NCBI GenBank assembly: GCA_010909165.1
Contig: VJWM01000016.1
Coordinates: forward strand, 186,001-250,000
DNA length: 64,000 nucleotides
Source: Anthoceros angustus
Lineage: Eukaryota > Plantae > Anthocerotophyta
Direction of reading: 5' to 3'
A model generated the notes under the pieces. It saw only the letters and a list, made by a program, of their open reading frames with translations, was not told the DNA's origin and searched no databases. The translations under genes and the position numbers were made by a program. Shown here piece by piece: positions 3,096 through 32,625 of the stretch; the first letter of the stretch is position 1, and every line of letters begins with the position of its first letter.

Positions 3096-3499
3096 CACAC
3101 ACACGCGAGGACCGCACCGCCTTGATCGTGTAGAGCATTAGTGCCGTATGTGCCCATGGACATAGACAACGGGTTTAGGTAGGGGTTTGCATGTGGTATG
3201 ATGCCATGTTTTGTTTTTAATGGTCGAACATGAGCCGTATGTTGGCGTGTATGGGCGGAGGTTAAAATGCACCTACATATATTTTGTCATTAAACCGCCT
3301 GCTGTGGAAACCCTTGCCCCGAAACCCTCCAATATGAAATGGCAACATGAAGTGTGTGCCACATCCTCGAGCGCGAAATAGCGAACATCGCGGCTGACAT
3401 CGGGTGCCAGCGCCTTGTGCATCTCGGCATTCCCCGTGGCTACTAGGCCATAGGAAGCGAGTAATGGTGGTGCAAACGGATCGTGCGCAATTTAGGTTG

Positions 3500-5939: not shown

Positions 5940-7320
5940 GCTGCACACGGCTACACTATCGGGAACTAAGGTCACGTTTCTAAGGCGTTCTTTATGCGCC
6001 TCTCGAAAGTGTCAACATCCATCGCCGCAGGCGTCATCATCTTCCTTCCGTCAACCGGAGGTTGAGTACCATATAGCGTCGATGTCTGTTGCCTCATCGA
6101 GGGTCTCCGATCCTTTCTTTCATTCTCTTGACCCTTGGGGCACAATTTGAGCCTTCCCAATATCCTTCTCGCTCACGCAAACCTCCTTGGCCCAGTGAGA
6201 TGGACCTCGGCAGCGGCTCGTGTGTCGGCTCCTCCTCCGCATCCGGATGCTTCATATCCATGTACATGTTGTGGAATGAATTACGCACATGCATCCAATA
6301 TCCATTCCCTTCCTTGGAGAATGTCTTGATAAGCTTCATCATCAAACCTAAAGGCCATAGGGTAGGCGGACAACAAGTTTGTCAAGTGGTATAACGACTT
6401 TTTCACGGTATGGTGGGCAATCATCGACCGACCATCATTGAAAGTGCCGCAAAGCATTAGGTAACATGACACGTCAACTCGAGCTTTTCGCACCCCAACC
6501 GACAATGACATACTCCGTATCGAACCCACCCTTGTCGTTGTTGACATTTGTCTTGTCCCACAAATGAAACAAGTCCACGCCCTCGCACCACTTCCGCATA
6601 GGCTGCACAATATGTGAATCTTCCACACCATGCATTATGATCATCCCGAAATCCTCGCATTCGCTTAAGTATTGGAAGGAATGCAAAACATTACCCACTT
6701 GCCAAGCATCAAACCTTCCATCCTTAGGGCCCTTGTCGAATCCACGTGGGACATCCATCACAAGCAAAGAGTACCTCCTCTTCCTCACAAAACCTCGCAT
6801 ATCCTGGACATCTCGAGCATGAATCTGATACTGCACTTTTTTCTCCGACTGTGGGACAGTGAATTGCAACCGTCCCTCTTCTATGTCCCTATCTGCGAGC
6901 TCCCGTTGCTCATCCTTCAAGCCCTTCCATGTGTTGACCTCATAAATAAACTGTTGAAAGTTTTCAGGGTACTTGGTGAGGACTGCAATGTTTTTTGTTG
7001 CTGCACAAAAAACAGGTTGTTTGTCAGTATTAATGGGAGAGGGACTTCGCCGGCATGCCCTCCCTGCAATAGGGCCTCGGGTTCATCCAGGCGCGCGGCA
7101 TGCCGCCCTCCCTCGGGCTACCCCTCGGATAGGCCCTTCCCACAGGCGGGCCGGCGCTGCGCCCCAAGCGAATATGGAAAATCGGGCGTGGGAAGGAGGA
7201 AGGAAGAACAACATAATATTTTAAGCGGTGAATATACATCAAGCGGCTTTTGGCGTGAATATCGCGAAGCGGGGTTTCGATGGGCATTGAAATGCGTATT
7301 CATCAAGACCCTAAACACGC
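5940..7320 (-). pseudogene. Beta-class DNA amino-methyltransferase (N6_N4_Mtase-like), copy A, 5'-truncated and frameshifted as assembled
   Basis: ORF 6474-6920 has YSLLVMDVPRGFD (DVPRG at 6755-6741), LWDKTN (6560-6546) and FDTEYVIVGWG. Downstream are PLGLMMKLIKTFSKEG (6354-6307) and EWILDACA* (6307-6281). The order motif IV, WxK/E, KPxxL..LI..S.EG..(V/I)LD is the beta-class arrangement. Confidence 0.8.
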
Positions 7321-7553
7321 GTAAGTGACACACCTAGGCGCGGCATGCGCCCAAGTCATGCTTAAGCGTTACGTGCCTTGGGCGCGGCATGCAGCATCCA
7401 AGATTCATGGCCTTTGGCAATGAATGCTGGACGTCGGACAAACACCCTCCTTCTGGAAACTACCGAATGGCTTCTGGGTGCTCAACATCGTTAGACACCT
7501 AGGCTAGTGGCTAAGAAACCACACGTGATGGCTTCTCCGGATGGCTATTAAAA

Positions 7554-7645
7554 CAAGGAGCATGGGGAGCATAAGGGCATGGGGAGCATGGGGAGCATAA
7601 GGGCATGAAGAAGAAGAAGAAGAAGAAGAAGAAGAAGAAGAAGAA
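7554..7645. repeat. 9-bp GGGGAGCAT/AAGGGCAT minisatellite followed by a (GAA)13 microsatellite
   Basis: Read directly from the sequence; (GAA)13 spans 7607-7645. Confidence 0.95.
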
Positions 7646-7762
7646 TGAGGGCATGAGGGCGCATGCCGGCGCCCTTACTTCAACATATAGTTTGTGCTTC
7701 CAATTGTTTGCGTGCAAGAAAGTTAATGAAGTGGCAACACTCGAAAGTTATGAACAAGAGGT

Positions 7763-11800: not shown

Positions 11801-12065
11801 CATGCTACACACCAAGAAGGGGACACGGTATAACAATGGGCGCTACCAACTGCTTGGGTGAGCGAAATTTATCCGGTTACAAAGGCGTGAACAAGATTTA
11901 TCCGGTCACAAGGGCAAATGTATCACGAGGACATGGCACGTTATTATGCTTACGGTGGAGTGTGGCGTCCATGACCATTCACGTTATAATCAAGTATGCC
12001 GTTATTATTTTATAACACCAATATCACGAGATCTTGCTACGTGATATATGGTGCATTAAAAAGCC

Positions 12066-12083
12066 ATATGTTTTGTAGTAGTG
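12066..12083 (-). mobile_element. CACTA terminal inverted repeat (5' end of a minus-oriented element extending leftward)
   Basis: Plus-strand TTTTGTAGTAGTG ends at 12083, which reads CACTACTACAAAA on the minus strand. It is preceded by subterminal repeats and is co-oriented with the Tnp2 remnants. No partner end or TSD was found in the window. Confidence 0.8.
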
Positions 12084-13249
12084 GAACGCATGGTCTTCAC
12101 ATTGTTGTAGCAACGGTTGTTTGCTGAAATTCGGAAAGAAGAATATAGAGTGAACACCATAAATTTTGAAGGGGGGGAATATCCTCGATGGGGGTTTTTT
12201 GTGAATAACCGCTGAAGAGGGTTGGTGATGGGTCTAAAAGTGGGTTCAGCTATTAGGAAACCATACCGGAAAAAGGGTCCGGCTCTTGGATCATACGAAG
12301 CCTTGGTTCATATGACGAAAGGGGTGACCCTCTTCCCTTAACCATTTGTTTCGCCAAAACAAGACCCACTAACACACCTCGTATGCCGGTCAAGCAATAC
12401 CGCTAGCGTAATCGCGAATCGAACGCCACTATGGAAGGGTTATGCCTCATGGACACGTTCAAACCATCAACATATTTATGGGAAGAAAATTTCGTTTCTG
12501 CCTGTGTGTGATCCTCTATTTTGAACACAGGAGGCAGGATGCTGGCCGGCGCCTCCTGCCTCACCATGTGGAAGGTCACATGGAACATGTTTGCTATCCA
12601 CTTGGGCACCGCCTTCGTAATGAATTTGAAGTGTGGATGTGGTGCGGCGGCATGTTCCAAGTGGGGCCGCCACGCCCGCCATTGTCCACAAGGACACATT
12701 CCACATGTTTGATATCGCATGGTCACCACTTCCTTTGGAATGGCATAGAATGTAACCTGCGTAGGGGGTCATGTTGCATGCCGTGGTGTTACACAACTAC
12801 CCCAAATCAAACCGATCACACGCAACATATTCGTGACACATACCATCATCAAGGACACAGGGACCCAATACATGGTATGTGCAATCGTCATTGCGCCTAC
12901 TTCAATTTCGATAAAGTTATGCACAAGAACAAGGAATAGGGGGCCAGCCGCGCCCCACCCTTCCATCGCGATTAAGTTGGAAAGGATGGGCGTAATGGAC
13001 ACGTGAAGTGGGAGCCACATCCATACAACCCCTAATGAGAATGGTTCAGCCGGTCGTCCTACCAATAGCTATTCGTCCCCCGAGTTCACGTCATCGCTGT
13101 CATTCCCATTATTGTCATCGCTATCCTCCGCCACACTTTGACCGGGTTGTATGAATCCGCACTCGCTCAATTTGTCCTCGATCGCTTTTGTCCACCGATA
13201 CAAATGTTTCCGTGCATTCAAAATAAAACCGTAATAAAGGATGAGTATC

Positions 13250-15900
13250 ATTGACATAGACCTCCTGATGTTTTGGGATAAAATACCTTATTCCCTTTTT
13301 CCCAAAGGTCTGCCCATCTTGTTTGGGCTTCTCGTAGTATATATTCCTCTACATACCGCCAGACGCCGTATGATCCGTCCGATACTGGATAAGAAAGTGA
13401 GGTTGTGGTGCATCCAACCTCACGTCTGCTACTTTCCCAATCCGTAGGTCTGTATGCTGCGTATGGCATCGCGAGGAACATTCCTTCTTGATCTCGCAAT
13501 ATCGCCATTCACGCGCCATTTCACGCTGCCTTCCAATGTTTTGATATGCTCCGTGTACATATCTCGCTGGGAAGCTCCTCAATGCTTCCTCTAGCAAAGC
13601 TTCATCGTACATGAAGGGTCTACTGCTCTTCCTCTTCAAAGACGGGAGAACCATTTCCAAGGACGGTCCGAACAAGGCCGATGTGGTTTTCGACAATAAC
13701 AAAGAATCTCGTCGTCAACCTGCAATTCTTCCCACCACTTGTACTCTTTCTACATAAGGTCGCAAACCCACTAACCCATCCTTCAAATGAGCCACACCTT
13801 GGGTGGAGTGCCCCGGTTCCTTTTTATCCTGCACGTAAGGACATCCGCAGCCGTTATGGCCTCGAGGAACGAAATTTAAAACTCCAAACCGCCTCCGCTT
13901 CCCAAAGCGGTGAAGTTGAATAACGCTTGCTCGATGAGGGACCGCATCGGCCAGTTTGTCCGTAATTTTGAACCGTGTGCGACATTATTCAACTTCTTCA
14001 CCGCCGCATACTTCACCTCCGCCCTCGCTCAGACATGCATATATGTCCGGAACTGAACCTCCAATGAACCTTCACCTCGGAGAGGGAGTATATGCCTCCC
14101 CGGTATGTCCGCTAACACGGTAGCGTAGCGCTTCTTTGTGTTTAAGGCTTTTGGAAAAGCAGAAAACATCCGGTCTATTTGATCATGGTGTGACCAACCA
14201 AGAGGAATCCCACCTTCACTTTTTCGAACGCGTGCCCATATCAACGAGCATGTTCAAATATGCAAACAATAGCTGATTCTTGTTCTCCGACATGTATTGT
14301 CAAGTTGCAAATACAACACTTTGGGCAGCACACCATCATAGTTGTGGATGACATCTTGAATGACGATAGTCAAATTGGCATCATTCCGAGGTTGGCGAGT
14401 GCAAAACGCCGTGGCTTTGTGGGTGTAGTTGTGGATCATGCACCACCACGTGAACAAAATGCGGCATTCCTCGCCTAGGTTTTTCGGCCACCTCAACATG
14501 TGCGGTAGCTCTTCTTCTCGTCCATGCCATCGATACATAGCAGCATATACTTATGTGGTTCAACATAACTCTTGCTCCTTGTTTTGTCATCTTCGACGCC
14601 GCTCACACGCTGTGGGCGCCCAATGCTTTGATATTTCTCTGCACATAACATATGCACACCGTAGTTTGTGAGCCCCTTTAAAGTTGTCAACTTACAAGAC
14701 AAAAAACATAGTATGATGTCCAGCAATCATCGTGGCCAGCATCACTCTCCGACATGTGGCAATGTATGTCACGGACACCGCCAACTTGACCTTCCTCCAC
14801 CCCCTCTCCACCCTACGACGGACCTTAAATGATATACTGGGCGTAACACATTTGTCAGGCATTTCCAAGCCCGGGAAGGTCAGTTACAAGGCAGAATACT
14901 TGTAATGTGGTTGGGGGCGCCGGCCCACCGGCGCCCCCTGGCCCTGACCTCATTCCTGCAAGGTCGAGATGGTAATAGCGGTGCCTTCGGCATGCCGGGG
15001 CCCAAGCAATGTGATAGGCACATGCATGGGTTACCCGAACAGGGCGCCGGCCGACCGGCGCCCGCATGACCAGGGGAACCCTCCTTAGATAAGGTTCAGA
15101 GACAGGTGGGCGCCGGTACCGGCGCCCACTGGGACATGTCCTGCGGGGCACATTCACATACTACATATAATCGCCATTGAGGGTTTGGCCACATGGTCAA
15201 CAACCCTCAGATCGGAAAGCAAGGGATAAGGATAACAATGTAACTTACCTTGATCAACCTTTGAGATTGTATTTCGATAGTTGTTTTCAATCCAGCGACA
15301 ATGAGCAAGTAGAGAATCAGACTTTGGAATCTTTACCTGTTGAAGTGCCCTTTCCATAGCTTCAAGAACCAGGTCACGATCACCGCGACCTCTTTGTTCA
15401 CAATGCCGCCTATATTCACTCCAAATTTCTAGTTTTGTGTATGTGTCGGGTAAGTTGAAGACCTCGATATTTGGAAGTCTCTCACCATGTTGAGGAAAGC
15501 ATTGTCCATCCAGGCTATTGCACTTAATGCATGGTGAGACTGCTTTTGGATTCGCCTCATAGCATCCCACTGCATTCAAGATGACTCTACTCTTCAACTC
15601 TTCATACCGGGCCGAGGCAATACACTCTCAAGGCGCAAAGCAAAGATCTAAAGGATCCCCCAAGATGAGTCACAACTTTGACGTTACCATCCTGCAGACA
15701 ACCGTATCGTGGATTCCAAAATGTTTCGCTCTCGCCTCCCCATCCAGAATAAATATATCGTTGTTCACGAAACCTTTCTTTTGTCAACTGTGGAGACACA
15801 TCCGATTGCAACATGCCTTCCGAAATCAATGTTGATACTTTCGACTTCACATTTCCTCATTGAGACCCCCTCGCCTCTCGCACCGGACACTCGTAGTCTC
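13250..15900 (-). pseudogene. Sola-like (DUF7869-type) DDD transposase remnant, copy 1
   Basis: Motifs: YMLLCIDGMDEKK (ORF 14493-14726), GVLPKVLYLQLDNTCR (ORF 14254-14538), HDQIDRMFSAF (ORF 14029-14244), and the N-terminal LPDTYTK..IWSEY...VKIPKSDS (ORF 15154-15597). A GC-rich intron-like segment lies at ~14830-15150. Confidence 0.8.
14913..15129. repeat. Three GC-rich palindromes with core GGCGCCGG-N(2-4)-CCGGCGCC
   Basis: 14913-14938 GGGGGCGCCGG-CCCA-CCGGCGCCCCC; 15042-15063 GGGCGCCGG-CCGA-CCGGCGCCC; 15106-15129 perfect GTGGGCGCCGGTACCGGCGCCCAC. Confidence 0.95.
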
Positions 15901-18599
15901 GCACCAAAGTCTCACTCACGGTTTGGGGTGATAAGATGGCGGATGTCGATGTCCGGACTGCTCGAAATCGCCCCGCCTCAGGGATTGCCGCTTCGCCGTC
16001 GATGGTGCGTGACGGACTCCACCGCAGAACAACCGCCCACGCCGGAGCCCACCTTGGGAGGGCCTTTTCTAGCCGCTTGCTCACATTGTTTGCATGGAGA
16101 TCCTTCCAGTGCATACTGGTTAAGATTTCTTGGTCCGCCAGGCACCTCGGAATGGTAGGGAGGAGAGCCCGCGATGTCGGCCACCTCCGAAGCTACCGGT
16201 GTGCAAAGACTTCAGTTAGAGGATAAAATTCACAAAGTCAACCTCCATTAGATCCGGTGATGAAACAAACCTTCGTGGACCTGAGTGGCGCGAGGAGAAC
16301 TGGAGATGTCTTGCCGACCTGGACGCCTGGGGGCATTCACCTCCGCTCTTCTCCTCGTCGCTGTTTTTTCGGAAGATGTCTTCATATTGGGATTGACCTC
16401 ACCATCCGCAAAGTCAAGGCACAATCAAGGGGAATGAGGACATGTTTGCACGCAACGCATCCACGACGACGACATTCTGACCGAAAGCGTGGCTTACATC
16501 GCCGCCCCTCTGCGGAGTGAGTGGCGCGAAGCATTTTGTTGGGCGCCCGAGGTAGGACGAAAGTGGAGGAATGAAAGAAGGCAAGGTTCATTCTAACAAG
16601 ATACGTTGAAATGTCTAAGCCTTCCGGGAGGCCGCTTTGGATAATCACCAACCATATAAAACCATTGTTGAAGAAAACGCGTCGTTAAGTTACTAATGCT
16701 TGCGTGGAGGAAGTAACGGAAAGTCATTATGGTTTGTAATTAAAACAAACCCACACGCAATGGGAAAAGCGAGACGTTAACTGTAGGTACAACATGGCGG
16801 CGTTAATAATGTGACCCAGGTTCGAACCATCGGCTAGTTGGAGCAACCAGAAACCCTAACTTAAAGTAATTATTCAGGAGAGGTGAACGAGTTCTACCGG
16901 CTTTAAAAGCAAGTTTAACAGCATACAAAACCGGCGTGGAGCGCAACCTCTCACGAAACGCGAGCAATTCCCAGCGCGACGAGCGTTGAGCGGGTCTGAC
17001 TTCTCGGCGGAGAGAGTGAGCGCCATCTCTAACCCCTTGATTGCAGCAGAACGCGAGAAATTGGGAGGAGCGCCCGTTGCTCGTGGTTTTCTCACTTTCG
17101 TTTCGATTGTGAATCCATTGACGCTTTGTTCGGAATTGGGGTCGCTGATTACAGAGAAGGAAGGCCCATCCGAATTGGCCTATGCCGAAATGAAGGTGAT
17201 GGCGGGGGCGACGAAGCAAGAAGGATCGGCGAATCCGGATCCCGAGCCTGCAGGGACGAAGAAAACGAGAGTGAGCGGAAAGCAAAGACAGGCGAGAAGG
17301 CGCCGATGACGGTGTGGAAGACCTCTCTCTTTGGGAGGACATGCTAGCTGGGCCGCGGCTTCCGCAGGGGCCACTCAAGTCCGGAAGCCTGGCTCGGCAA
17401 AGGCTTCCACAACAAAATGGAGGCCATGGAGAGAAGGTGGAGAAGGGTGGGAAGAGGGTGGCTCCTATTCCTTCGCCATACCGAGGAGACAGACGACACC
17501 TTGGAGCTCGATGGATGCAGAAGGTCTTGGACAAGGATTGGATGGTTGTTCAGATCCGCAACCGTAAGACGAGAGCATGTTTTGACGCCGTTATACAAGC
17601 CGTGGATTATGGGTTACAAGGATGCACCGAATCAACGCAAGGGCGGGTGGTGTGGGCAACATTGGACATGTCAATGGGGATCTCAGACATTTTGTGCATT
17701 ACAAGGCCCCAAGAATTTGATGCGGTGCCGGTGGTCCCGAGCTATACAGAGCGTTCGAGATCGTTCAACAATCTTGTGATCAAGAAGTGCGAACCCGCTT
17801 TTGGAGCTTTTGGAATGGGGGAGCAATCAGATTCGCAACTCGATCCAATTTCCGCTTTCCAATGTTTTTGCTTCACGCTTGCTGTCTCTAACAGAGCATT
17901 GTTCATTGCGCAGGCTCTGTGATGGGGAATGCGTTCATCGTGACTTTGTGTGCGGAAATCACACAAATGCTCAACAGTGAGGTCATGGCGGTGGCGCAAG
18001 AGCCGAGGTGCGTGACGAGAGGAAGAGAAGGGCGACAACGAGGAGGGCACCGATTTGGCCCGAGGATGAAGACTATGGGCCAATGCCCGATATCTGGGGC
18101 ACATCGAAGAAAATTCGGACGCACAACAGACGAGGATGCGGGGTGTTCATGCCTTATGAAACACCCTCGTGCATCACCGGAGGTGGTTGAGGGCGCCGGC
18201 GCCGTAGCCGCCACATGGCGGAGGTCGGTGGGACGGGCGCAGGCTCTTGGAAGCCGGAAACCGGCGGCTGCCGGCCGCGCCTCACACCAGAGGAGGCCCC
18301 TGTAGGCACCATCGCATGAGGCGGGAGGAGAGGGGCGGCCGCGGCGCCCGCTTGACTAACAGGGCTGCGAGAGGAGGAAGGGCCTAAGGGAAAAGGAAGG
18401 CGATCAAGAATCGAGCAGAGGAAGGAGAGGACCATCCTCCAAAAGCAAAGAGGAAAGGCAACAAAGCTGCGGAGGGTGGAAAATGTGGGTGACATTCCCA
18501 CGCTCATGTGACAACAGAGACCGGGGAGGATTGAAGCTATCCGGATGAAGACCCTTGACACGGGTCGAGAAGCAAAGATGCGAAGAAGGTAGTATTGAA

Positions 18600-21000
18600 A
18601 CAGCTTGGTGAAATTGGAGAACCTTCGCCGCATCGCACCCGACGCCCGGCGCAGATACTGAGGGTGGATGAAGCATGGGCCAATTATTTGGCTGTTATAT
18701 CGAAAGGGAGGATTGAAGAGGGCGTTTTGCCTTTATTATGTATGATTGATCCTGGAGTGTGATGACATGGAAAAACTAGACAAGGTAGATTCGCCAAAAA
18801 TATGTCATGGGAGTCCTGGAGGAAACCACACTTATGCGGCAATGAAGCATCTTGCGATATCTCTCCGCAAAAGTGCGGTTTCGATATGTGGAGGCTCATG
18901 TGTACGTGGTCTCAAGTATACGGAGATCGAGTCCACGCGAGACCATGTCGATGTCGACAAGCGCCGGAAGATGAATTTTATAGAGGTGAGGTATTTGCGT
19001 GATGAATTGATTATTGCGAAACGGATGTGTGCGATGACCATGACATGGAAATTCAACTTGTATAAGGTGTTGGGGCTTATTGAGGATGATGAAGCACGAA
19101 GATGATGTTTATAAATGTAACAAGGTTGACAAGACCTACATTTTTATGCATCATAAACAAGAGGGTAGGGTATGGGAAAATGTAGACAAGATATTTACCA
19201 AGTGGAAGTGTGGGGAGTTGCAGGCGGAAGAAGCATGTGATAGTGGACAAGCAAGAAGAGCAAGGTGAAGCCGAAAGGACCGACGAGGTTAACAAAATAG
19301 ACACCTATGTGAAGCCAAAAGGTGCTTGCAAAACCTTGGAAATCATTTCAAGGGATTCCAAATGGGAGGTGGGCAGCGCATTTATTATCATAATGAGAAG
19401 TGCATGTGTCTCATTGACCCGAAGGAATGGATGATCTTATATATCGCTTCCTAAGAAAATTTATTATTCAAGTGGCGGCTAAAATACTTGTTGTTTTTCT
19501 TTTCAAGGGTTCGGCAGGTCGCCTACGCTCAATTCCATGAAATGTCTTGAGCCATTCCAAACAGTTGTTTGGCCGGAAAGGTCTTGACAAAGCCATTTTC
19601 CGCATTTCTTCATTTTTTACTTTTAGGGAGCCGGGATATGGACTTGCATGGACTCCGGATATCTAGCGGCCGCCGTGGCGCCATCTTCCGATTAGGAAGG
19701 AAATACCCCCTCTCATGGATGTTCCCCGTGGATTTGACATCGGGCCAATGGACAAACGAATGGATTTATCCATGATGGGGTGCCGTGGTTCCAAAGTTTC
19801 GGAGAAAGCGGAAAATGGCGACTTAGAATTATCGTCATGCATGGTGTTGAAGAAGCCCATACGGTAAGGGAGGCTTTGAAGTGGTGTGCCAAAGGCGGCT
19901 TGGTGTCATTCATTTGGGATAAGACTAACATGAACAACGAGAGGAGGATTTGACTGTGGAATACGCTATGCTTGATGGGGTGTGAAAGATGGATGTTCAA
20001 GGGCTGCCATGATGCCAAATGTGATGCACGGACCTTCTTTCCATTTTAATTCTTTCGGAGGCCGGCCAGCGCCGCTTCGGGATCCTTTGTTGGGGCCGGC
20101 GGCTATCTCGATCAACTGTTGTGGCGCGGCCGGCGCTAACGTCGACACGTAAGCCAGCGGGGCCAATGGACAAAGCGAATGGATTTATCCATGATGGGTC
20201 GGTTCCAAAGTTTCGAGAGAAAGCGGAAAATGGCGACTTAGAATTATCGTCATGCATGGTGTTGAGCCCGCCGTGAGGAGGCTTTCGAAAGTGGTGTGCC
20301 AAAGGCGGCGATTCATTTGGGATAAGACTAACATGAACAGCGCGGAGGAGGATTTGAGGCATGGAATACGTTCAGTTGGATGGGGTGTGAGGATGTTGAA
20401 GGGCTGCCATGATGCCAAATGTGATGCAGGACCTTCAACAATGGAAGATACATTGTGGACACCCTACCGCTGCCAAGAAACAGTTTAATTGCCTCATGAC
20501 AAGTTGGTAGTGTGCCCATACGAGACCATTGGGTCTTATGATGAAACTTCGTGAGGACATTCTCCAAGGAGGGAGTTATTGATGCATGCTCGTGCAAAGG
20601 ACTACGACACTAGCTGCGCTGTGTGGCTTAATCATTGCAATAGGCGGACTTGAGATGCAGTTACATTGCCCAGCAGACACGTTGATGTCTTGCCCGATGC
20701 TGCATTTAGGAGCACTTTTGAGCCGCAAGGGGACCATCGCCTGGGCAAAGAGGTATGTATTAGCGAGAAAGACGCTTGAAAGCCGTCGCATTGAGTGCGA
20801 AGAGGTTGAAGACGACAACCGCGAACTTATGGAGGATGGATGAGACTTTGGATCTTTGTATGGCGGCGACCCGACCATCGACACCCAAAATGACATCAAT
20901 GAAGACCAGGAGGCGTTTTTAATGAGCTTTGACGCATTGTGAGATGGAGCGATGAATTTGCACTTGTAGAAGATTCGGTGGATGCAATGGTGGACTCTCA
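18600..21000 (+). pseudogene. ParB-like domain fused to a beta-class DNA amino-methyltransferase, copy B (frameshifted as assembled)
   Basis: ParB-like part: GGNHTYAAMKHL (18818-18853) and VRGLKYTEIE...KMNFIEVRYLR. MTase part: MDVPRGFD (19715-19738), WDKTN (19915-19929), PLGLMMKL (20526-20549), TFSKEG-VIDACS (20557-20592) and TTTLAA (20601-20618). A single-protein fusion is inferred from colinearity on one strand. Confidence 0.75.
19743..20437 (+). repeat. Internal ~290-bp tandem duplication within MTase copy B, separated by a ~120-bp GC-rich insert
   Basis: GGCCAATGGACAAA starts at 19743 and ~20161. GATGCCAAATGTGATGCA..GGACCTTC ends at ~20037 and ~20437. WDKTN is encoded twice (19915 and 20318). 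Confidence 0.9.
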
Positions 21001-21049
21001 AACAATCCCTCGCGATAGAACAACATGAGCGATTAGCAAAATCACTGCG

Positions 21050-23500
21050 CTTAGCGGGTGTTGGTGTTTAGTTTTGCAGTTGCTTCTCTACGAGAAGATT
21101 CCCGGATGTTTCGACCCCTCTTAAAATTAACAATGGGTCTTTTCTCAAATTTTGTTGTTACACTGGCTCTTTGTAGTAAAGTGATGGCCAGCCGGCCATG
21201 TGGGGTTCGTAAGGGGATGCCATTTTCGGTTTGGTTTTCCGCTAGGGATATATACATAATGGTGTCTCGAAATAAGCGTTTTCCGCAATTTGTGGATGGT
21301 GTCTTTCCGTCAAAGGGTTATTTTTCCTTGAAGGGGTTTGTATATTCCCCCTTCAAAATTTATAGTGTTAGTGCACGAGGTATAAGCCTCGAATGCCTCG
21401 AGAACAGAAATATATTTGTAAGGATTGCTCGAGGTTGAGCAACCACTGGCCTTTCGCATGTGCTCAATTTTCTCTGGGAGACAATGGGTTGCAATGTTGT
21501 GTTGAAGTTTCGGAAAAGTGTTACGCATTGGATGGCGCAGATGAAGGGTCAAAATGTAGAGTACTAATCTAACACACCATGGTCATCGAATTGAAGTTCA
21601 AGGGCATGGCCCGAAGATCATGTTGGAATGCATTGCTTGGATGGAAAAGTTTTTCAAGCTAACACCGAATGCCAATGTTTCAATTTTCAACTTGCGATTC
21701 ATATACCAAAGGAGAGATATTCCGGGACTACAAGCGGGAGGTTTCAAGAGCTGGTTTGACCAACGCCTCTCATTCTCATACATGCCTTATGGAAGAAACA
21801 TTTTCCAAAAGTGAAGATACCAAAGTGTAGTTTTTCAAAATCGTCCAATGCGAACGTTGAAGACAAATGCATCGAGATGACCAAAGAACCGACAAGAACA
21901 AGGTATTTCATATCCGAGTTTTCGCTTTGACTTCCATGGAATCATGAGCACTAATCGACGCTCCCGACGGAACTGTGCGCGTGACCAGCGCGACAGTGGG
22001 TGCGCGCGCGCGCACTGTGCAAGACTTGTGCGCGCGCACCGGTGGGTGCGCGCGCGCGCGCGCACCGGTGGGTGCGCGCGCAGTGCGCATACGCCACAAG
22101 ACTTCAGGCACTGGAGTCGCCGACGCCACACCGTGGTACGCACTGGCCACGCACTGTTAAGGCGAGCAGCGCAAGAAAGCTGCGCCGGGTCGGAGCCATG
22201 CGCGGCGCACCAAGGTCAAAATTTTTCACCATCCATCATGACAGAGGTCCATGAGCAAAGACTCGTGAACATCATCGGCGATCACAGAGAGCGACTAAAA
22301 CTTGCAAAACACCGTTTGAAGTGTAAAGGCCAACCGAGCAAATACATTGGAATGGCGATAGACGGATGGACCAAAGCAAGGCGGAGCTCCACATTTTCCC
22401 TCCAAAGGATTTTGCGGATGGGCTTATTCGGGTCCATGTTGTGGGTTGTTTGGTATACAACAACATTATGAAGACCGGTGGTGTTTGTGAACTTCCCGAA
22501 TATTCGGAACGACGCCAACTTAACTATTCATATCATCCAGGATGTTATTCTCACATATGAGACGGTTTGTCAAGACGCTTTTACTTAAAATCGGACAACA
22601 CGGCGGAGAAAACAAGAATATGTTGTTGTTTGCATACTTAAGTATGCTTGTCGAGAAGCTTCGATAAGGTGAAGGTGGGCTTTCTTCTTGTCGGGCACAC
22701 GCATGATGCAGTTGATCAAATGTTCTCATGCTTTTCTAAAAGTCTCAGGCACAAAAAAGCAATGTCACTCGAAACCCTTATGAGTTTGATTCATCAGGCT
22801 TATACACCCAATCCGGAAGTCAAAATGGTTTCCGAGGTAGCCGATTTCAGGAGCTTTGTCTGGCCCAATGGGATGGGTAAAAGAGGAACACGAGATGCAG
22901 CGGTGAGAAATTTGCACAATCATAGTTATCAACATCAATTCAAAATTTCAAGGGAAGAAAGAGTCATGAGCCACGTAACACTCTTCGTGGCAAGGCACTT
23001 TCTACTTGCTCACATTGGGAACCGCTGAGGGTTTGGAGTTCCTTCTCGAGAATACCAAATGTAGATAAGGGGAGCGCCTTTATGTCCACTTCGGGCATGG
23101 AAACTCATGACGCACCGCATAAATCATTGAGAGCCATCAGAAAAGCCCTCAAAGAACCGATGCAAAAATATCTTTCTGTGGAGGACAAAGTATGGTGGAA
23201 CTCGTTTTGGGCATCACAGTCTGATATTTGCGACAAAATCAGAGGAGGAGTCGATCGAGAACTTCAAAAAGCATGGGAGTGGTACAACAGGGACGAGGCT
23301 GAGCGGAACTTAAATCCCATCGACATTCCAGATGTCTTTGTGATTCCGCTCCAGCCACACAACATGTATCTCGGAATTTTAGGCCACCGGTGCCGCAGCC
23401 CATCGAGTTGGCGAGATTCGATGGGGATGTGTCCGAGATCGACGAGGCCATATGATTTCCCATGAGATGCATGACGAAGTGTGCCTTGATTGCGTGGAAG
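21050..23500 (+). pseudogene. Sola-like (DUF7869-type) DDD transposase remnant, copy 2, with a probable intron at ~21902-22243
   Basis: Motifs: CIAWMEKFFK and KVKIPKCS (~21630-21830), HRERLKLAKHR..KYIGMAIDG (ORF 21944-22471), MDQSK (22366), LKSDNT..ENKN (~22585-22620) and KVKVGFLLVGHTHDAVDQMFSCFSKSL (ORF 22648-23028). Confidence 0.85.
21990..22090. repeat. (CG)n-rich palindromic array inside the putative transposase intron
   Basis: A perfect 22-bp palindrome GGTG(CG)7CACC spans 22045-22066, and CCGGTGGGTGCGCGCG units are repeated. Confidence 0.9.
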
Positions 23501-24099
23501 ACTTGGATTTCTTATGTGACGAACCTTACCTAGTTGTCCGGTGGTGGGTGACGAGAATAGCAATGCGCTTTGAGGAAGGTACCTACGGAGGAGATATTGG
23601 CTCCACACACAATGTTGATAGAGAGGGTTTGCGATAACGGAGGAAGCGACCAAAGCATCCGGATCGATCGTTGATATCGGAGACATTTATTTTGGCATAC
23701 GGGTTCTCCTTTGCAAGGGATAGCACTCTACAAGTACATTGTGAGCTCATCAAGACAAAGTCGCTTCGAACTTCAACATCTACCACCGAAGAAGTTAATA
23801 GGGTTGAAGATATGAGGCACCACCCCCAGAGAGTGCATGGAGGAAGATGTTGGTTGGATGAAAATCCGAAAATAAGGGTGGTGTAGCGACCGGTGATGAT
23901 GATAGACATCCGACTTCAGCTCAAAGCACCAATCGCAACAAGAACCCGCGAGTAGGCAACCTGCCATTGGTGCTTTTGAAGGCATGTTTGATGATGATCC
24001 TAAGACAAGGTCACTCAAGGAGACTAAACACCGTAGAGGATAGAAAGGTGATAGGGTGTTCTTCGTAGCTTTAGGGCATAGGATAGATAGATGAGGTGT

Positions 24100-25580
24100 C
24101 TATGTGACGTCACGATTTGTGCAACTTCTTATGTCGTCGGGGCTTCCGCCACATTCGCAGACCTCCAAAAAGACATATTTCCTCAATCGAATGATATGTT
24201 TCGCACTGCTTTTGATATGTGCGCATGCTATGATACCCTTGTTTAAGCATGCACTACGCCTAGCCCCCCGGTATACAAAACATATAGAACCACACAAATT
24301 GCGTAAAAACCTGACATGCCGAAATTATGGAAGAACAGCCCTTCATCACACCGATTTAATTAGCCACGAACCCGAGTGCAAGGCCACCATGGTATATGAC
24401 CGGACAGTGGTGCCGAGCCAAGAATGCCCAAACCGATGGATCAACACCTACAAAACTCAACAAAACCAACCCGCCTTTATTCGCTAAATAGGCTGGGATT
24501 TTTCCAAAACCCCTATTGAGGAGAAACCCTTTCAAATGTACTGCTTAAGAGAACGGTCGGGAGGCCGCCTTCTCAAGTGGAGACTTGAGGAACATCGCAG
24601 AGGGGCGAGGAGGGCGGACGGACATTGAAAGGGCTCGCAGCGAGCCGGGATGCACCGCTGACGTTGAGGAGGTGGGCGGCATGGTGCCCGGATGGAGGTA
24701 GCCGCCACGCTGGTCCTACCGAGAACAATAGAAGACGCCTGCAACCTCATCCTACAAAATGTCTCCATCACGCCAAGGTGTGAACTGGGAGTGAGGATTG
24801 TGCAGACCGCGGGCCAGCGGCCGCCGTGCCTAGGAGGTGTGTCTATGTGGGCGTGCGATTTGTGCAACTTCTTATGTCGTCGGGCTTCCGCCATACATTG
24901 AGACCTCAAGAAGACATATTTCCTCAATCGAATGATATGTTTCGCACTTTCGTTTTGATTTGCGCGCGCACAAGTTTCGCCCTTGTTTAGCACTTACGCG
25001 CGCCTAGCCCCAGGTATACAAAACATATAGAACCACACAAATTGCGAAACAACGACATGCGAAATTATGGAAGAATTGGTCCACCCCTTCATCACACCGA
25101 CAATCCACACGAGTGCAAGGCGCCACCGGTGTAAATGACGGACGGAAGTGGTGCGGGAGAATGCCGAATCCGATGGATCAACACCTACAAAACTCAACAA
25201 AACCAACCCGACGGTTTTGCGGAATAGGGTTGGGATTTTCAAAACCCCTATTGACAGGAGAAACCCTTTCAAAAGCGATGCTTAAGAGAACGGTCGGGAG
25301 GCCGCCTTCAAGTGGAGACTTTGAGGAACATCGCGGAGGGGCGGAGGAGGCGGGGCCGGACATTGAAAGGGCTCATGAGGCGGGGGATGTGCACGCGGGC
25401 GTTGAGGAGGTGGGCGGCATGGTGCCCGGATGGAGAGCACTCTGGGTCGCGAGAGCAATGAAAGGCGTGCACCTCATCCTACAAAATGTCTCCATCACGC
25501 GGCAGGGTGTGAACTGGGGAGTGAGGATTGTGCGAGGCGCTGCGGCAGTGAGGCTTTCGTGCCTAGGAGGCGGTGTGGCG
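24100..25580. repeat. ~740-bp tandem duplication
   Basis: GATTTGTGCAACTTCTTATGTCGTCGG occurs at 24114 and 24857, and GTGCCTAGGAGG at ~24828 and ~25559. Confidence 0.9.
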
Positions 25581-26609: not shown

Positions 26610-29600
26610 GGAAGTGGCGAGGGACATGGCGTACGAGGCAGGCTTGAAGTGTACAAATTACCTCCCGGACATGCACGCATCAGTGGCAGCAGTGTGCTTG
26701 TATTGCAGGGGACGGGGGATCCCACTGCAGCAGATGGTGTGGGAGTGGAATGAAGACCTGTGCACACTGTGGACATGGAGAGCCCTTAACCTCTTCAGAA
26801 CACTTTTCATCGTGTACGCGGAGGCACTAATGGCAACAAGCGGGGCGTGATGCAAGCGTGGGTGAGACAGTAGACATGGATAGGAAAGGTGAGGGAGTGA
26901 GGGCATCCCCGCTGGTATGAAATAAACCTAAGGGCCGGAGGGGCCACCGCGTAGCCTTACGACACAGGGGCTCCAAGGATAGCGTCCTTCATGGTGCACC
27001 CGGTCTCTCGCGCGGGCCACCACAGAGGCATGGGCATGCACATTCCGCAGTTATCTGGGCTGACGCGTGAATGTTGGAGGGAAATTGTGGAGACGCATGC
27101 CGGAAGCACCTTCATGTACAACCGCATTCCCCTTAAAGTGGTGGCAGCAGCCTCCAAAATCGACGAACCTTTGAAGTAGCTTCGCGATGCCTAAAGACAT
27201 CGAAGAAGGCGACTGTTAGGTGACAAGGCCAAGGGAGAGTGGAAAAGTGGTCCAAAATTCATGGACGGGGGAACACGGTGCACGGCGGGAAGCGGGAAGC
27301 ATGAACAGAGGGCGAAGTTCAAAATGTGGGCACAGTTACCTGGCGGAAGGGTGGGAAGCCACCACGGAGGGAAGCATCAAATATTGGACAAGTCAAAACC
27401 GTGGGAAGCGGGATCTGATTGAACCTTCAAACCTAAACCGTGAAGGCCTCCTAAAGCAAGTCCTAACAAAACCCCTGCTCCACGGTGCCTAAAGCACATG
27501 ACCACAAGGCCTAACCCCCATGATCACTGTCCTCGATGATGTAGAGGTCGTTCATCTCCTCCCACAAGACATGGTTGGCGTGCGTCTAATTCGTAGAAGA
27601 CGTTGAGATGAAATCCAGGAGGCGATAAGCGTCGAGGCCGGCCCGGCCACAGTAGTCAAGCCGTCGGAGTGAAACTTGGCCATCCATAGCTTGAAGTCCT
27701 CCAGTGACTCCGGGTGCTTGGACCGCGAGGCCTCGCAGTGATCGTTAGGACCCAATGGCCATCCATCAAAATGAGAATGCATGAAATAGTGCGCTTCCAG
27801 CTTCTGGAAGCCACTCTCGCAGTATGAAGTCCAAGTCCAGTCCAAATACCTGCGACCACATTCCCTCAGCTCGAAAAGAACTTCGAAGTCCAAGGGGTAG
27901 TTCTCTATGTGGCAGATAAGGTCGTTATGGTCCTCCGCATGCTGCAACAGCGCATCAAGCTCCTTATAGGACAAAGGATGCATTGGCTTCTTGGGGTCAT
28001 AAGACACCAAACAACTCACTCCACATATTAGGATCGGGTGAGCTCGGAGGAGACCGTGGAACCCTCCTCCCTTCGCCCGCACATGCATGGCTGCAGCTGC
28101 AGGGCCTACGGCATGTGAGGAGGAGAGGGTGGGCGGTGCACGCCATCTCGCCCAGCCTGATAAGCACGGAACAATACTGCAGTGGCATGACATGCTCATG
28201 CAAGTGGCGAGGGACATGGTAGGCGTGCTTGAAGTGTACAAATTACCTCCGGACATGTATCGCAGATCGATAGTGGTGACTGTGTTTTGTATTGTGCGAC
28301 GGGGATCCCACGCAGAGATGGTGTGGGAGTGGAATGAAGACACTGCACAGGACATGGAGAGCCCTTAACCTCTTGAACACTTTTCATGAGGTGCGCGGAG
28401 GCACTAATGGCAACAATCGGGCCGGTAGTGGACAAATGAGACATGGATAGGAAAGGTGAGGAGTGAGGGCATCCCACCGGTATGAAATAAACCCTAAGGG
28501 CCGGAGGGGCCACGCGTAGCCACACACGTGGGGTGGATAGCGGCTCATGGTGCACCCGCCCTTGTGGCCACCGGCAGGCATGGCATGGGGCATTGCTCGC
28601 AAGTTCGGCCCGACCGACGTGAATGTTGGAGGGAAATTGTGGAGACGCGGTCGGAAGCACCTTCATGTACAACCGCATTCCCCTTGAAGTGGTGGCAGCA
28701 GCCTCCAAAATCGACGAACCTTTGAAGAGTTCGCGATGCCTAAAGACATCGAAGAAGGCGTTAAAGTGACAAGGCCAAGGAGAGTGGAAAAGTCCAAAAT
28801 TCATGGACGGGAACACGGTGCAGCGGGAAGCGGGAAGCATGAGCAGGCGAAGTTCAAAATGTAGGCACATATCCGCCGAAGTGGTGAGAATACCAATGAG
28901 GGAAGCATCAAATATTGGACAAGTCAAAACCGTGGGAAGCGGGATCTGATTGAACCTTCAAACCTAAACCGTGAAGGCCTCCTAAAGCAAGTCCTAACAA
29001 AACCCCTCCCAAGTGCCTAAAGCACATGACCACAAGGCCTAACCCCATGATCACCGCCTTGATGTAGAGGTCGTTCATCTCCTCCCACAAGACATGGTTG
29101 GCGTCAATCTGTGAGAAGAAGCGCTGAGATGAAATCCGGGAGGCGATAAGCGTCGAGGCCAGGCACTGTGGAGTCAAGCTTGAGTGAAACTTGGCCATCC
29201 ATAGCTTGAAGTCCTCCGGTGACTCGGGTGCTTGGACCGCGAGGCCTCGCAGTTGATCGTTAGGACCCAATGGCCATCCATCAAAATGAGAATGCATGAA
29301 ATAGTGCGCCCACCCGGAAGGCCTCTCGCAGAAGTCCAAGTCCACCCAAATACCGCGACCACATTCCCTCAGCTCGAAAAGAACTTCGAAGTCCAAGGGG
29401 TAGTTCTCTATGTGGCAGATAAGGTCGTTATGGTCCTCCGCATGCTGCAACAGCGCATCAAGCTCCTTATAGGACAAAGGATGCATTGGCTTCTTGGGGT
29501 CATAAGACCTGTAAAACAACTCACTCCACATATTAGGATCGGGTGAGCTCGGAGGAGACCGTGGAACCCTCCTCCACTGCTGCCCCGCACATGCGTGGTG

Positions 29601-29655
29601 CATGGGCTCACGCATGAGGAGGAGAGGGTGGGCGGTGCACGCCATCTCGCCCACA
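26610..29655. repeat. ~1.5-1.6 kb tandem duplication carrying unidentified ORF remnants on both strands
   Basis: AAGTGGCGAGGGACATGG occurs at 26612 and 28202, and GCACGCCATCTCGCCCA at ~28138 and ~29638. ORFs 27552-28355 and 28908-29789 share SYDPKKPMHPLSYKELDALLQHAEDHNDLICHIENYPLDFEVLFELRECGR. Confidence 0.9.
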
Positions 29656-29814
29656 ACCGCAGAAGCTCCGGAACAATACTCAGAAGGGCACCAGTACCAT
29701 CCGCGTGCACCGCTTGCAAGAAAACGAGCATCAAACAAGGCATCACCATGGGCGCGAAGAAATGGGGAATGGTTGTGTGCTTGGTGCATGGATGGGGCTA
29801 TTCTGTGGGTGCCT

Positions 29815-30560
29815 CCTCCCTACCGCGCCCGCCTGCCCGCCTCGCCCGCCTCGCCCGCCGCCTCCGTTGCCGCACCACCTCGCCGCCGCCGCCTCGCCCC
29901 GCGCCCGCCTGCCAGCGTCGCGTCCGTTGCCCACCGCCTTCCTCCGCCTCGCCCGCCTCGCCCGCCCGCCTCGCCCGCCTCTCCTTCCCTTGACTGCCCG
30001 CCTCGGTCCCTCACCCGAGTGAGGCCTCCGTCCCTCGGCCGCTGCAGGGCCCGCCGCCCGCCTCGATCCTCGTCTACTTTGCCGCCTGCGCCTTCCGTCC
30101 CTCGCCGCGGCCCGCCCGCCCCGCACCACCTCGCCCCGTGCCTTGCCCGGCGGCCACTTTGCCCGCCCGCCCTCGGCCCGATTGCAGGCCGCCACACCAC
30201 CTCGATCCCTTGTCTCTTTGCGCCCGCCTGCCTCGCCTCGCCCGCCTTGCTCCGCCCGCCCCACTCCGCCCGTGCCTTGCCCGGCCACTGGCGGCCGCCC
30301 GCCTTCCTCCGCCTCGCCCGGCCCGCCCCGCACCACCTCGCCCCTCCCCCTCAGCCCCGGCTGCCCGCCCTCGGCCCGCCAGGTCAAGTGGCGGTGGGCT
30401 CGCCACCGCCACTGCCTGCTGGCGCGCCCAACAGTGAAGGCGCTGGTGGCGGGCGCTGCCTGCTGCTGGACACGCCCGCCTCGCAACTCGTGCATACCGC
30501 CCGCCTCCGGACCTCGCCCCTCCGCCCGCCCCGCACCACCTCGCCCCAATCGCCCCAACC
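29815..30560. repeat. Extremely GC-rich degenerate array of CCTCGCCCG / CCGCACCACCTCGCC motifs
   Basis: CCGCACCACCTCGCC recurs at ~29871, ~30121, ~30328 and ~30531, with many (CCCG)n and CCTCGCCCG units. The plus strand is strongly C-skewed. Confidence 0.9.
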
Positions 30561-31097
30561 AAAATGCGTGGCGCCAAATCGGTGTTTGTCGCCCCTACCC
30601 TAAACCATGCTGCTCCAACCTCTTAGGACATGAACCCTAAAAACGGGCAGGTGGCTTGCCTATGCCACCTACCACACCCTAAAGTGGAACACTTCGCGCG
30701 CGGAAAAAAAATTTCTTCATGCGTGCACGAGAAAAAACCACAATGAGTGTGAGGAAAAAAAGTAAGTTCCCTTTCTATCTTCCGGTGACCGCGAAGTGGC
30801 CGCTTTGGTGCGTCCCATTTGGGCTACCTCATTTCGGTCGGGTTACCAAACTGGACACCAAATGTTTTGCGGAAGAAAAAAAATGTCCATCCCCTCTGTC
30901 CTCTTTGGTATGCCATACAAGCGCCCACGGCCGATGTCGTCAAGTGCGTGACATCGAGAGGGAAAAACGGCGGGAAAACTTCTTTTTGTCACCATCGAAA
31001 AAAACCCTAAAGGCTTCCTGACCAGATCGGTAATTCGGTACAGCCTTACGGAGATGACAGGACGACTATATCTGCGTTCCAAGAACTGGTAGCCTCG

Positions 31098-32625
31098 TCA
31101 CTCTTTGAGGGTGTTGGCAATGTCCACCACGAATCGGTACCGCACATCTTTATTGGCCATCCTTTGCAGCGCAGTGTTCATATCTTGAATAGGTACTGTC
31201 TCGATGAGCGGGAGCACCCCATTTTCTGCCGAGAACTCCAGCATTTCCTGGATCTCCTTAATCCCACCGCCGCCGCTGCTGGTGATGGTCTTCCTCCCTG
31301 CATCACCAACTGGCTCGGTGAGGAGCTTGCCCTGCATCAACGCTCAAATAAACGCTGCTCAAAGGTTCTGCACTGCTGGATACCGAGCAGGAGGAGGATC
31401 GGAGAGAACTTGAGCTCGTGGGGAACGCCTACTATGACTATCACGCCTCCCAGTTTGAGCAGCTTGATGTAATCGTCCAGAGGGTGGACGGTGGGGCAAG
31501 TATCGATGATGAAATCGAGGGTGTTCTGAGCGACCTAAACCGGGCGCAGAGGGGTAAAGTAAGGAAGCAAGCTTACGGTGTCTCGTCTCGTCTTAGAGTC
31601 CGGGGAGGTGTGGATCAAACCTGCATTTGCTGCGCATCGGAGGAGTTGACGAAGTGGTCTGCCCCGAGGAGGTTGATGGCCTCGTCCTTCTTACCCTCCG
31701 AGGTGCTGAAGACCGTCACCTTGAGGCCGAAGGCTTTCCCGAATTTGACAGCCAGATGGCCCAGCCCTCCGAGAGACACCACTCCCAGGTGCTTCCCGGG
31801 CTGGTTCATGCCGTACCGCATCATGGGGCTGTACACAGTGATGCCCGCGCACAGCAGCGGGGCTGCCGCATCCAGCGGCAGCTTGTCCGGGATCCGAAGC
31901 ACGTACCTGGAGCAGGCCCAAAATGTGACACGGGAAGGGTAGGAGAAGACAGGACAGGACAGGACATGGCCCGGCCCCGCGCGGCTCGGCCCGGCTCCGT
32001 GATGAGCTCACCTCTGGTGGGTGACCATCCAGGTGGAGCAGCCGCCCATGGTGATGCTGCCGTCCTGGTCATTCCGTTGTATGTCAAGACCATGCCCTTG
32101 GCGCAGTAGTTCTCCTGGTGGTTGGCGCAGCTCTCGCAGTTCCGGCAGGAGTTGGCGTAGCATCCGACGCCCACCCTGTCGCCGGGCTTGAGGTGGCTCA
32201 CGTTGGCCCCGACCTCCGTCACCAAGCCTGTGACTTCATGTCTGCAGTGCCAGGCAAGGGAATGTGGTGCGGGTGAGCGCACACACAGAGGGGAGGAGAG
32301 CGAGAGGCGGGATTGATTGATTCAGTCTTCACCCTGGCACCATGGGATATCTTGCGTGGTGGTCCTTGTTGAAGATCCAATACAGTTCGCCGTGGCACAG
32401 GCCACAATGCGTGATTTTGAAGGCCACATCGTCCGGTCCGGTGGGCCTGCATAGCACGCTGCCTGTTACTCCTTAACACGGGGTATCATGTTCTAAACAA
32501 TGAGGGAAATGCGGAAGGCTGGACAACCTGCGATTGAACTTGTAAGGGGACAGATGGCCTGCCTCATCGCGGGCTGCCCACCCCAGGCAATTCCCGCTCC
32601 CCTCTCCCGCCGGGGTCTCGCCCAT
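31098..32625 (-). CDS. CAD: Cinnamyl alcohol dehydrogenase, AtCAD1-like clade (Zn-dependent MDR), 6 exons, with an apparent 1-nt frameshift in exon 3
   Basis: Exons: 32625-32528 (MGET...[20 protein letters not shown]), 32446-32333 (ITHCGLCH...YPMVPG), 32241-32012 (HEVTG...CRNCESC...NYC), 31906-31621 ([14 protein letters not shown]...), 31534-31384 and 31297-31098 ([14 protein letters not shown]). All introns are GT-AG. Exon 3 is 230 nt where 231 keeps frame. Confidence 0.93.

Follow-up and report, generated by a model that had tools for sequence, protein, structure and literature searches.

Examination of a 64,000-nucleotide (nt) stretch of the Anthoceros angustus genome (GenBank assembly GCA_010909165.1, contig VJWM01000016.1, positions 186,001 to 250,000 of the forward strand; hereafter, the window, with coordinates counted from its first letter) revealed a degraded plus-strand gene between 18.5 and 21 kb, termed copy A, that is predicted to combine a ParB-like module with a beta-class DNA amino-methyltransferase (MTase) domain. 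Copy A very probably represents the accessory gene of a dead, Sola1-like transposon of 9,217 bp, spanning positions 12153-21369, with 23-nt terminal inverted repeats (TIRs) and a 4-bp AGTG target-site duplication (TSD). In this element, the ParB-like/MTase gene lies head-to-head with a minus-strand transposase gene, as is also the case in a relative termed L005.

The two copies of the TSD, at positions 12149-12152 and 21370-21373, were read directly and are identical. The left TIR, AACACCATAAATTTTGAAGGGGG, occupies positions 12153-12175 of the plus strand, with similarity continuing to about 12186, and pairs with the right TIR, AACACTATAAATTTTGAAGGGGG, found at positions 21347-21369 of the minus strand. 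In an inverted-repeat scan, this pair (I5) was 96% complementary, with the AACACYATAAATTTTGAAGGGGG repeats corresponding to the element ends. Toward the interior of the element, the two TIRs remain similar for about another 10 nt, and on the outside their similarity ends precisely at the edges. When the TIR pattern was sought, two matches were obtained in the window, with none of 100 shuffled versions reaching two. The TIR motif was absent from the relatives that were fetched, no paralogous empty site was found within the window, and no palindrome arrays were detected in the element containing copy A.

Between these boundaries, the minus strand contains a decayed DUF7869 (Sola1-like, DDD-type) transposase gene at positions 14125-15627, comprising an N-terminal piece (15627-15157) and a core (14550-14125), with broken pieces reaching to about position 12400. 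The core was recognized both by tblastn with the L005 protein (E 1e-15 at 14520-14125) and by the Pfam profile PF25273 (E 4.8e-7 on 14550-14257). Transposases of this kind present D...DN...GHTHxxxD blocks. In this putative Sola1-type element, the transposase is represented by DUF7869, alongside TIRs and a TSD, and the proposal of an earlier, sequence-only reading of the same DNA (the initial annotation) that the gene resides within a DNA transposon was supported by the TIRs, the TSD and the partner transposase.

Three-frame translation of positions 18400-21200 recovered each of the ParB-like and MTase motifs quoted in the initial annotation, all on the plus strand and in the order given there, spread over three frames with stops in between. 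The first part of the ParB-like module (...VDEAWANYLAVISKGRIEEGVLPLLCMIDPG), at positions 18559-18759, aligns to the LDxxWV...G(A/V)LP block of L005, P0020, P0021 and L001 (alignments A2 and A5), a match that is not significant alone. The ParB-like core, frameshifted relative to this piece, is found in the stop-free piece at positions 18746-19102, which includes the GGNHTYAA box (GGNHTYAAMKHL, starting at position 18818) and the DH(N)...RK.F.F..VRY.R.E helices, and is followed in a third frame by a conserved helical linker (KHEDD...VWENVDKIFTKW) at positions 19044-19265. The MTase N-terminal region and motif IV span positions 19418-19864, with motif IV reading L-MDVPRGFD (DVPRG at 19718-19732). 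This region aligned by tblastn to the VMDVPRGFD of a second methylase fragment in the window (copy B, described below), and in alignment A3 falls on the CDLPYG of phages and the DLPRG/DIPYG of the family. The MTase central block (...IIVMHGVEEAH...FIWDKTNMN), at positions 19738-19950 with a stop at its end, includes WDKTN at 19915-19929, a motif that recurs at 20318-20332 in a tandem duplication of the motif IV-WDKTN segment (19742-20436), in which the first copy (19742-20037) and the second (20160-20436) are 83.8% identical along 302 nt by blastn (E 4e-82). Finally, the motif I region, at positions 20511-20840, is divided among the three frames, with PLGLMMKL lying in 20511-20579, RTFSKEGVIDACS in 20545-20610 and TTTLAA in 20583-20840. 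These pieces align, at the expected positions of the family profile (E 0.074), to the family block YQKP..L...I..FS..G.WV.D.CSGSG...AA and to the phage HPTQKP...GSGTT.

To assign these pieces to a family, hidden Markov models (HMMs) were built from outside relatives only, with no rows from the window, and were then run on its six-frame translation, which comprised 2,466 pieces. The ParB-like HMM matched the core (18746-19102; E 1.5e-7, HMM positions 97-208) and the linker (19044-19265; E 7.7e-5, HMM positions 208-268) in collinear fashion. The MTase HMM matched the central block (19738-19950; E 1.2e-7), which was also detected by tblastn with the relative P0009 (E 7.6e-7), as well as the motif I pieces, which appeared in the right order with weak E-values (0.07-0.13). 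The relatives were obtained from the Logan assemblies of runs SRR33208241 and SRR33208242, and include four proteins (P0001, P0004, P0008 and P0009) that match PF01555 above the curated cut-off (30-50 bits, relative to 26.7) and are themselves matched by the pieces from the window. Alignment A1 of the family revealed three conserved blocks, namely, D-x-P-x-G, W-x-K-T-N and YQKP..L...I..FS..G.WV.D.CSGSG...AA. The family is poorly represented in sequence collections, with a phmmer search of 1.84 billion representatives using the copy B piece yielding nine weak hits, among them these four PF01555 proteins, and two profile searches of a set of 5.8 billion adding close family members only.

Copy B was located by tblastn of the copy A pieces against the window, and corresponds to a better preserved methylase fragment on the minus strand (6097-7082) that is matched by the MTase HMM at 7082-6477 (E 2.3e-29). 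The latter segment is a 202-residue open piece containing VMDVPRGFD and LWDKTNVNN, while the segment at 6381-6097 includes PLGLMMKLIKTFSKEG. Copy B has neither a ParB-like module nor a DUF7869 partner. Copy B is closely preceded by a poly-T/A tract (about 7550-7680), and a 340-residue open piece directly downstream, on the minus strand (4123-5142), matches DUF4218 (E 5.9e-7) and probably belongs to an unrelated neighboring element of the CACTA/EnSpm type. A CACTA element was considered as the carrier of the ParB-like/MTase gene and was rejected, as the DUF4218 open reading frame (ORF) adjoins copy B and lies outside the TIR-bounded element.

The initial annotation had allowed for the possibility that the ParB-like and MTase parts would prove to be unlinked in other copies. 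They were instead found together in L005, in L001 and L004, and in L003. In L005 (9,089 bp), a 618-residue DUF7869 ORF (E 1.7e-49) occupies one strand, with an intact 488-residue ParB-like ORF (...RKLDMHWVETLMKKMKHCTWVAGALP...YTCYVLGGNHSWQARTRLA...ATDHNSIAEARKNFLFIDRVRYIRHE...) and then the methylase on the opposite strand. In L001, L003 and L004, the N-terminal module is likewise upstream of the methylase. L004, a contig from the second run (SRR33208242), is collinear with the genomic contig L001, showing 99.7-100% identity over three main blocks, and is missing segments of 95, 90 and 112 nt (L001 positions 2642-2736, 3330-3419 and 5199-5310), the second and third of which start with GTAAGT and the third of which ends with CAG. 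Because these intron-like segments of L001 are absent from L004, the latter corresponds to a spliced transcript of a ParB-like/MTase gene. The gene is eukaryotic. The ParB core of L001 is interrupted by a stop, though the gene was transcribed and spliced in the source of L004. Also found on L001, at positions 11918-12892 and 15394-15961, are a gene of the Peptidase_C48 (Ulp1-like) type and part of a RecQ-type helicase, both of them frequent passengers of transposons in plants.

The two-gene design seen here is already known from algae, with the element containing copy A being another, dead example. In Ectocarpus, the element Sola1-1_Ec32 carries a gene encoding an 1104-residue ParB and MTase protein on the strand opposite the transposase (PMC12477816; Genome Biol 2025), and that article, in turn, cites ParB-MTase proteins of green and red algal transposons (Iyer et al. 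2011; Petroll et al. 2025). Like the element considered here, Sola1-1_Ec32 is a DNA transposon with TIRs that bears, as an opposite-strand accessory gene, a ParB-like domain and an MTase domain of the N4C/N6A type. The two elements, likened on the basis of the published description, differ in size (21.5 kb, as compared to 9.2 kb here), and the copy described here is dead, resides in a plant host and presents D-V-P-R-G. As such, the linkage to a transposable element, in which the initial annotation had seen part of the novelty, was already in print in 2025, with algal precedents (PMC12477816). For land plants, no published description of such a transposon-borne ParB-MTase gene was found in the literature searched.

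Copy A contains at least six frameshifts, at least three in-frame stops and one internal tandem duplication. At least two of the frameshifts affect the ParB-like part, near positions 18750 and 19090. Since the HMM hits of the ParB-like core and the linker are contiguous, what separates them is a frameshift rather than an intron. In the MTase part, in-frame stops occur at positions 19538, 19664 and 19951, and a frameshift is found near 19770. The copies of the duplicated segment are spaced by 415 nt, with an exact 49-nt repeat at the same spacing and further frame shifts inside. Motif I is interrupted by two frameshifts within 100 nt and has lost its G-x-G (VIDACS/TTTLAA). With its own stops and frameshifts, the minus-strand partner transposase is as broken as the methylase gene. 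Copy A is a pseudogene; it encodes no working protein and the element is incapable of autonomous movement. The suggestion that the element carries its own DNA-modifying enzyme, able to mark DNA or to interfere with the host, accordingly does not apply to this copy.

Several points weigh against reading copy A as a ParB-like/MTase gene of a Sola1-like transposon. When the stop-free pieces of copy A and copy B were searched individually against Pfam, no MTase or ParB match was obtained, these pieces being too short or too diverged, and the MTase identity of the copy in the window is thus transitive, deriving from its relatives. A match between two 4-bp TSDs is expected by chance about once in 256 cases. 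The Sola1 label would draw on DUF7869, the TIRs, the 4-bp TSD and the two-gene design, together with analogy to the Ectocarpus element. As for the N-terminal module, no ParB profile match was found in Pfam, PDB sequences, PHROGs, NCBIfam or PADLOC, even with the intact L005 ORF as query. AlphaFold2 models of the ParB-like region, generated from 8-row and 11-row alignments, were unusable (predicted local distance difference test scores of 48.2 and 49.6, respectively), and a Foldseek comparison of the second model with the PDB returned nothing with E < 1.

Given these results, the possibility was considered that the N-terminal module is unrelated to ParB and is instead a mostly helical module, specific to eukaryotes and binding DNA or protein, in which GGNH mimics a ParB box. 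This alternative, which can be deemed unlikely yet deserving of attention, would account for the absence of ParB from any HMM library or PDB sequence search and for the low confidence of the AlphaFold models. It would also fit the composition of the box itself. The arginines of ParB box II (GERR / G-x-H-R) contribute to cytidine triphosphate (CTP) binding or to the active site. In the module, the GERR/GxxR arginines are absent, with the window presenting GGNHT and L005, P0020, P0021 and P0026 presenting GGNHS. Moreover, in comparisons of language-model features in the Atlas, the best neighbors of the module were unnamed eukaryotic clusters and DUF3723, and not ParB_N. Thus, for the 119-residue piece at 18746-19102, an unnamed eukaryotic cluster ranked first (0.94), followed by DUF3723 (0.92) and ParB_N (0.88). 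The unnamed eukaryotic clusters near the module (0.94-0.96; queries L005 3375-4838 and window 18746-19102) were commonest in Porifera.

Against this alternative, two independent queries, namely, the intact L005 part and the piece from the window, placed ParB_N and DUF6551 at 0.87-0.90 (ParB_N at 0.90 and 0.88, respectively; DUF6551 at 0.87), with DUF3723 at 0.97 and 0.92. Models of a DUF3723-like neighbor, furthermore, had ParB_N/HTH_ParB proteins as structural neighbors, with template modelling scores of 0.41-0.50. The pattern of the module, comprising a helix with L..h...G.LP, a strand, some 30 residues, a second strand, G-G-N-H-x..A and an acidic DHN...RK helix, parallels that of ParB boxes I and II, and the secondary structure of the low-confidence model follows this same order. 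Lastly, the published homologous architecture was termed ParB-like (PMC12477816). Searches for prokaryotic counterparts of the arrangement added little, with no meaningful match when the ParB-like region was compared to phages by tblastn and bacterial ParB-MTase fusions being discarded as comparators once the four plasmid hits examined turned out to be plain methylases of about 245 residues or shorter. Taken together, the module probably belongs to the ParB/Srx superfamily. To the ParB reading put forward in the initial annotation, the linkage, the motif pattern and the language-model similarity lend support, while support from profiles and folds was not obtained. A role as a DNA-loading clamp, which the initial annotation cited for bacterial ParB domains, is unsupported for this module, as a GGNH(S/T) box without the arginine does not imply a CTP-dependent clamp.

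The module can be compared with both ParB/Srx (PF02195) and DUF3723 (PF12520), with which it shares the boxes L..h...G.LP, strand and G-G-N-H-x..A, as well as language-model features (0.92-0.97 for DUF3723 and 0.88-0.90 for ParB_N). DUF3723 is encoded by a conserved accessory gene of the fungal Starship elements, and the module described here is likewise found on a large eukaryotic transposon. Unlike in ParB/Srx and DUF3723, HMM or structural matches are missing, as are the GERR arginines, and some 12 extra residues separate the boxes. A more far-reaching proposal, to be regarded as speculative and rather doubtful, would have the module be the ParB-derived module of DUF3723, kept repeatedly by unrelated transposons (Sola1-like elements and Starships), with the D-x-P-R-G methylase, in view of its conservation among copies only 25-55% identical, acting as a functional non-canonical enzyme or as an S-adenosylmethionine (SAM)-dependent DNA binder and not being a decayed one.

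The extent of the element was also considered, given how a second DUF7869 remnant follows on the plus strand at positions 21666-23760 (tblastn E 4e-40 on 22369-23760; Pfam E 2.9e-24 on 22642-23025). If the ParB-like/MTase gene and this co-oriented transposase at 22369-23760 were parts of one larger element, the partner would be this remnant, which is the better preserved of the two transposases and lies only about 1.5 kb past the MTase gene, on the same strand. Such an arrangement is improbable, since the unique 23-nt TIR and the matching 4-bp TSD close the element at 21369, between both genes, and since the two genes lie on opposite strands in both L005 and the Ectocarpus element. The N-terminal motif of the downstream transposase (21666-21755), moreover, begins beyond the right TIR, some 300 nt outside of it, and the remnant therefore belongs to a neighboring element. 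The downstream remnant is a separate element of the same superfamily, either adjacent or interrupted, for which no ends were found, and was rejected as partner in favor of the divergent, minus-strand transposase upstream. Within the neighboring element, two copies of GCGCGCGCACCGGTGGGTGCGCGCGC form a palindromic, GC-rich tandem at positions 22027-22082, just before the DUF7869 core.

Within the 9,217-bp element, the methylase part is, as judged from its sequence, a genuine relative of the beta-class amino-MTases, as had been proposed, with the motif order, the PF01555 matches of the relatives and the profile matches to M.RsrI and CcrM all pointing to this assignment. The circularly permuted order of the beta class, in which motif IV precedes the SAM-binding motif I, is present, and alignment A3, which includes two of the phage methylases matched by P0009 and in which the DLPRG of the family and the DVPRG of the window fall on the CDLPYG of phages, follows the order motif IV...W.K(T)N...motif I. 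When P0009 was compared with phages, DNA methylases were found in 390 records, covering 81-84% of the P0009 length, with E-values down to 4e-9. Against solved enzymes, the profile of alignment A1 matched M.RsrI (E 1.2e-8) and CcrM (E 4e-7), and also MboIIA and DpnA, with N6-adenine enzymes spanning 1.2e-8 to 8e-6. CcrM was also the best NCBIfam match of the methylase family. The structure of the N4-cytosine methyltransferase of rotifers (N4CMT) was matched more weakly than were the N6-adenine enzymes (E 2.7e-5). The ancestry of the methylase therefore looks like that of the adenine-N6 enzymes, and in particular of the phage 'DLPYG' group.

Phage and bacterial beta-class N6-adenine MTases, such as M.RsrI, CcrM and the 'DLPYG' methylase of Pseudomonas phage HU1, have motif IV, W.K.N and (H/Y)(P)xQKP...D.C.GSGT in the same order as the transposon family, likewise present D-L-P-x-G as motif IV, and are about 24-27% identical to it across more than 80% of the domain. 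They differ in that most family members and both copies in the window present an arginine in place of the motif IV aromatic residue, and in that the transposon family gene is eukaryotic, intron-containing and transposon-borne, with a long N-terminal fusion. The canonical (D/N/S)-P-P-(Y/F/W) is replaced by D-V-P-R-G in both copies in the window. In relatives, motif IV reads D-L-P-R-G or D-I-P-Y-G and in phages D-L-P-Y-G, with D, P and G being invariant. The catalytic loop thus carries a Tyr-to-Arg change, which is kept across copies sharing only 25-55% identity. Motif I is conserved in the relatives (VLDMCSGSGT) and is not intact in copy A.

The same data bear on whether copy A could be the remnant of a host gene, namely, a domesticated amino-MTase, such as an enzyme generating N4-methylcytosine (4mC) like Marchantia DN4MT1, that merely sits among transposons. 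Eukaryotic co-options of PF01555 enzymes do exist (10.1101/2021.02.12.428880; PMC8885841), with Marchantia DN4MT1 and bdelloid N4CMT being, like the gene considered here, eukaryotic genes specifying a beta-class fold of the PF01555 type. These are, however, host genes presenting (T)SPPY (TSPPY in DN4MT1) and with shown 4mC activity, whereas the transposon family presents D-x-P-R/Y-G, scores better with N6-adenine enzymes and travels as transposon cargo, here as a dead copy. In place of (T)SPPY and clustering with N4-cytosine enzymes, copy A shows D-V-P-R-G, and in profile scores N6-adenine enzymes exceed N4CMT. Copy A is, moreover, heavily decayed and lies between TIRs and a TSD along with a transposase. 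A host gene origin is thus highly improbable and was rejected on the basis of the TIR/TSD structure and motif IV. The relation to DN4MT1 and N4CMT drawn in the initial annotation survives as regards the existence of eukaryotic PF01555-type kin; the link is nonetheless remote, with D-V-P-R-G taking the place of TSPPY and N6-adenine enzymes being the nearest relatives among solved and annotated proteins. That the motifs reflect chance resemblance in junk DNA or bacterial contamination, as might be raised by the lack of a direct Pfam match for single pieces, can be dismissed as next to impossible, being refuted by the collinear family-HMM hits, the presence of copy B in the same window, the alignment with phage MTases, the spliceosomal introns of relatives, and the transposon context, in a window that also contains DUF4218 and CASP-like ORFs of plant type.

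Elsewhere in the window, a tandem duplication of about 1.5 kb lies at positions 26800-29600, where many repeat pairs are found at a spacing of 1503-1577 nt and with 80-100% identity. Long minus-strand ORFs at 27552-28355, 28196-28927 and 28908-29789 overlap this duplication and have no Pfam match. Two direct repeats of a unit of about 740 nt (81-95% identity) occupy positions 24096-25435, and repeats of the CGCC/CTCGCCCGCC type make up a low-complexity tract, very rich in GC, at 29800-30550, with the GC fraction reaching 0.61 in 30001-32000. An ORF on the minus strand at 61462-62067 resembles CASP-like proteins (Casparian strip membrane proteins; E 1.4e-5, 25.3 bits relative to a cut-off of 26.2), which fits a plant host. 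No Rfam match was found anywhere in the window.

In its original form, the plus-strand gene of the 9,217-bp transposon would have encoded a protein of about 900-1,000 residues, with a lysine- and glutamate-rich N-terminus, the ParB-like GGNH module, a helical linker and a beta-class SAM-dependent MTase, in an element that would once have moved by a cut-and-paste mechanism with a DUF7869-type transposase encoded opposite the accessory gene. In intact members of the family, the ParB-like part may bring the protein to DNA, perhaps that of the element itself. The methylase part would be expected to bind SAM, because motif I is conserved. Such proteins might methylate adenine at N6 or, less likely, cytosine at N4, or else, given D-L/V-P-R-G, act in a non-canonical manner or solely by binding, an option raised by the conservation of the Tyr-to-Arg change in the catalytic loop.

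As copy A is dead and its design has been published, it adds little to the question of whether such proteins write N6-methyladenine or 4mC in eukaryotes. Its usefulness lies in offering an element, cleanly delimited by TIRs and AGTG, in which the methylase gene is seen head-to-head with the transposase, and in pointing to the descent of the methylase from the phage 'DLPYG' adenine-methylase group, with a conserved Tyr-to-Arg change. The similarity to the DUF3723 of Starships, which HMM searches did not confirm, offers a lead toward a ParB-like module common to unrelated large eukaryotic transposons. More generally, a protein that binds and modifies DNA and is supplied by the transposon itself could allow the element to mark its own sequence or to interfere with silencing by the host.

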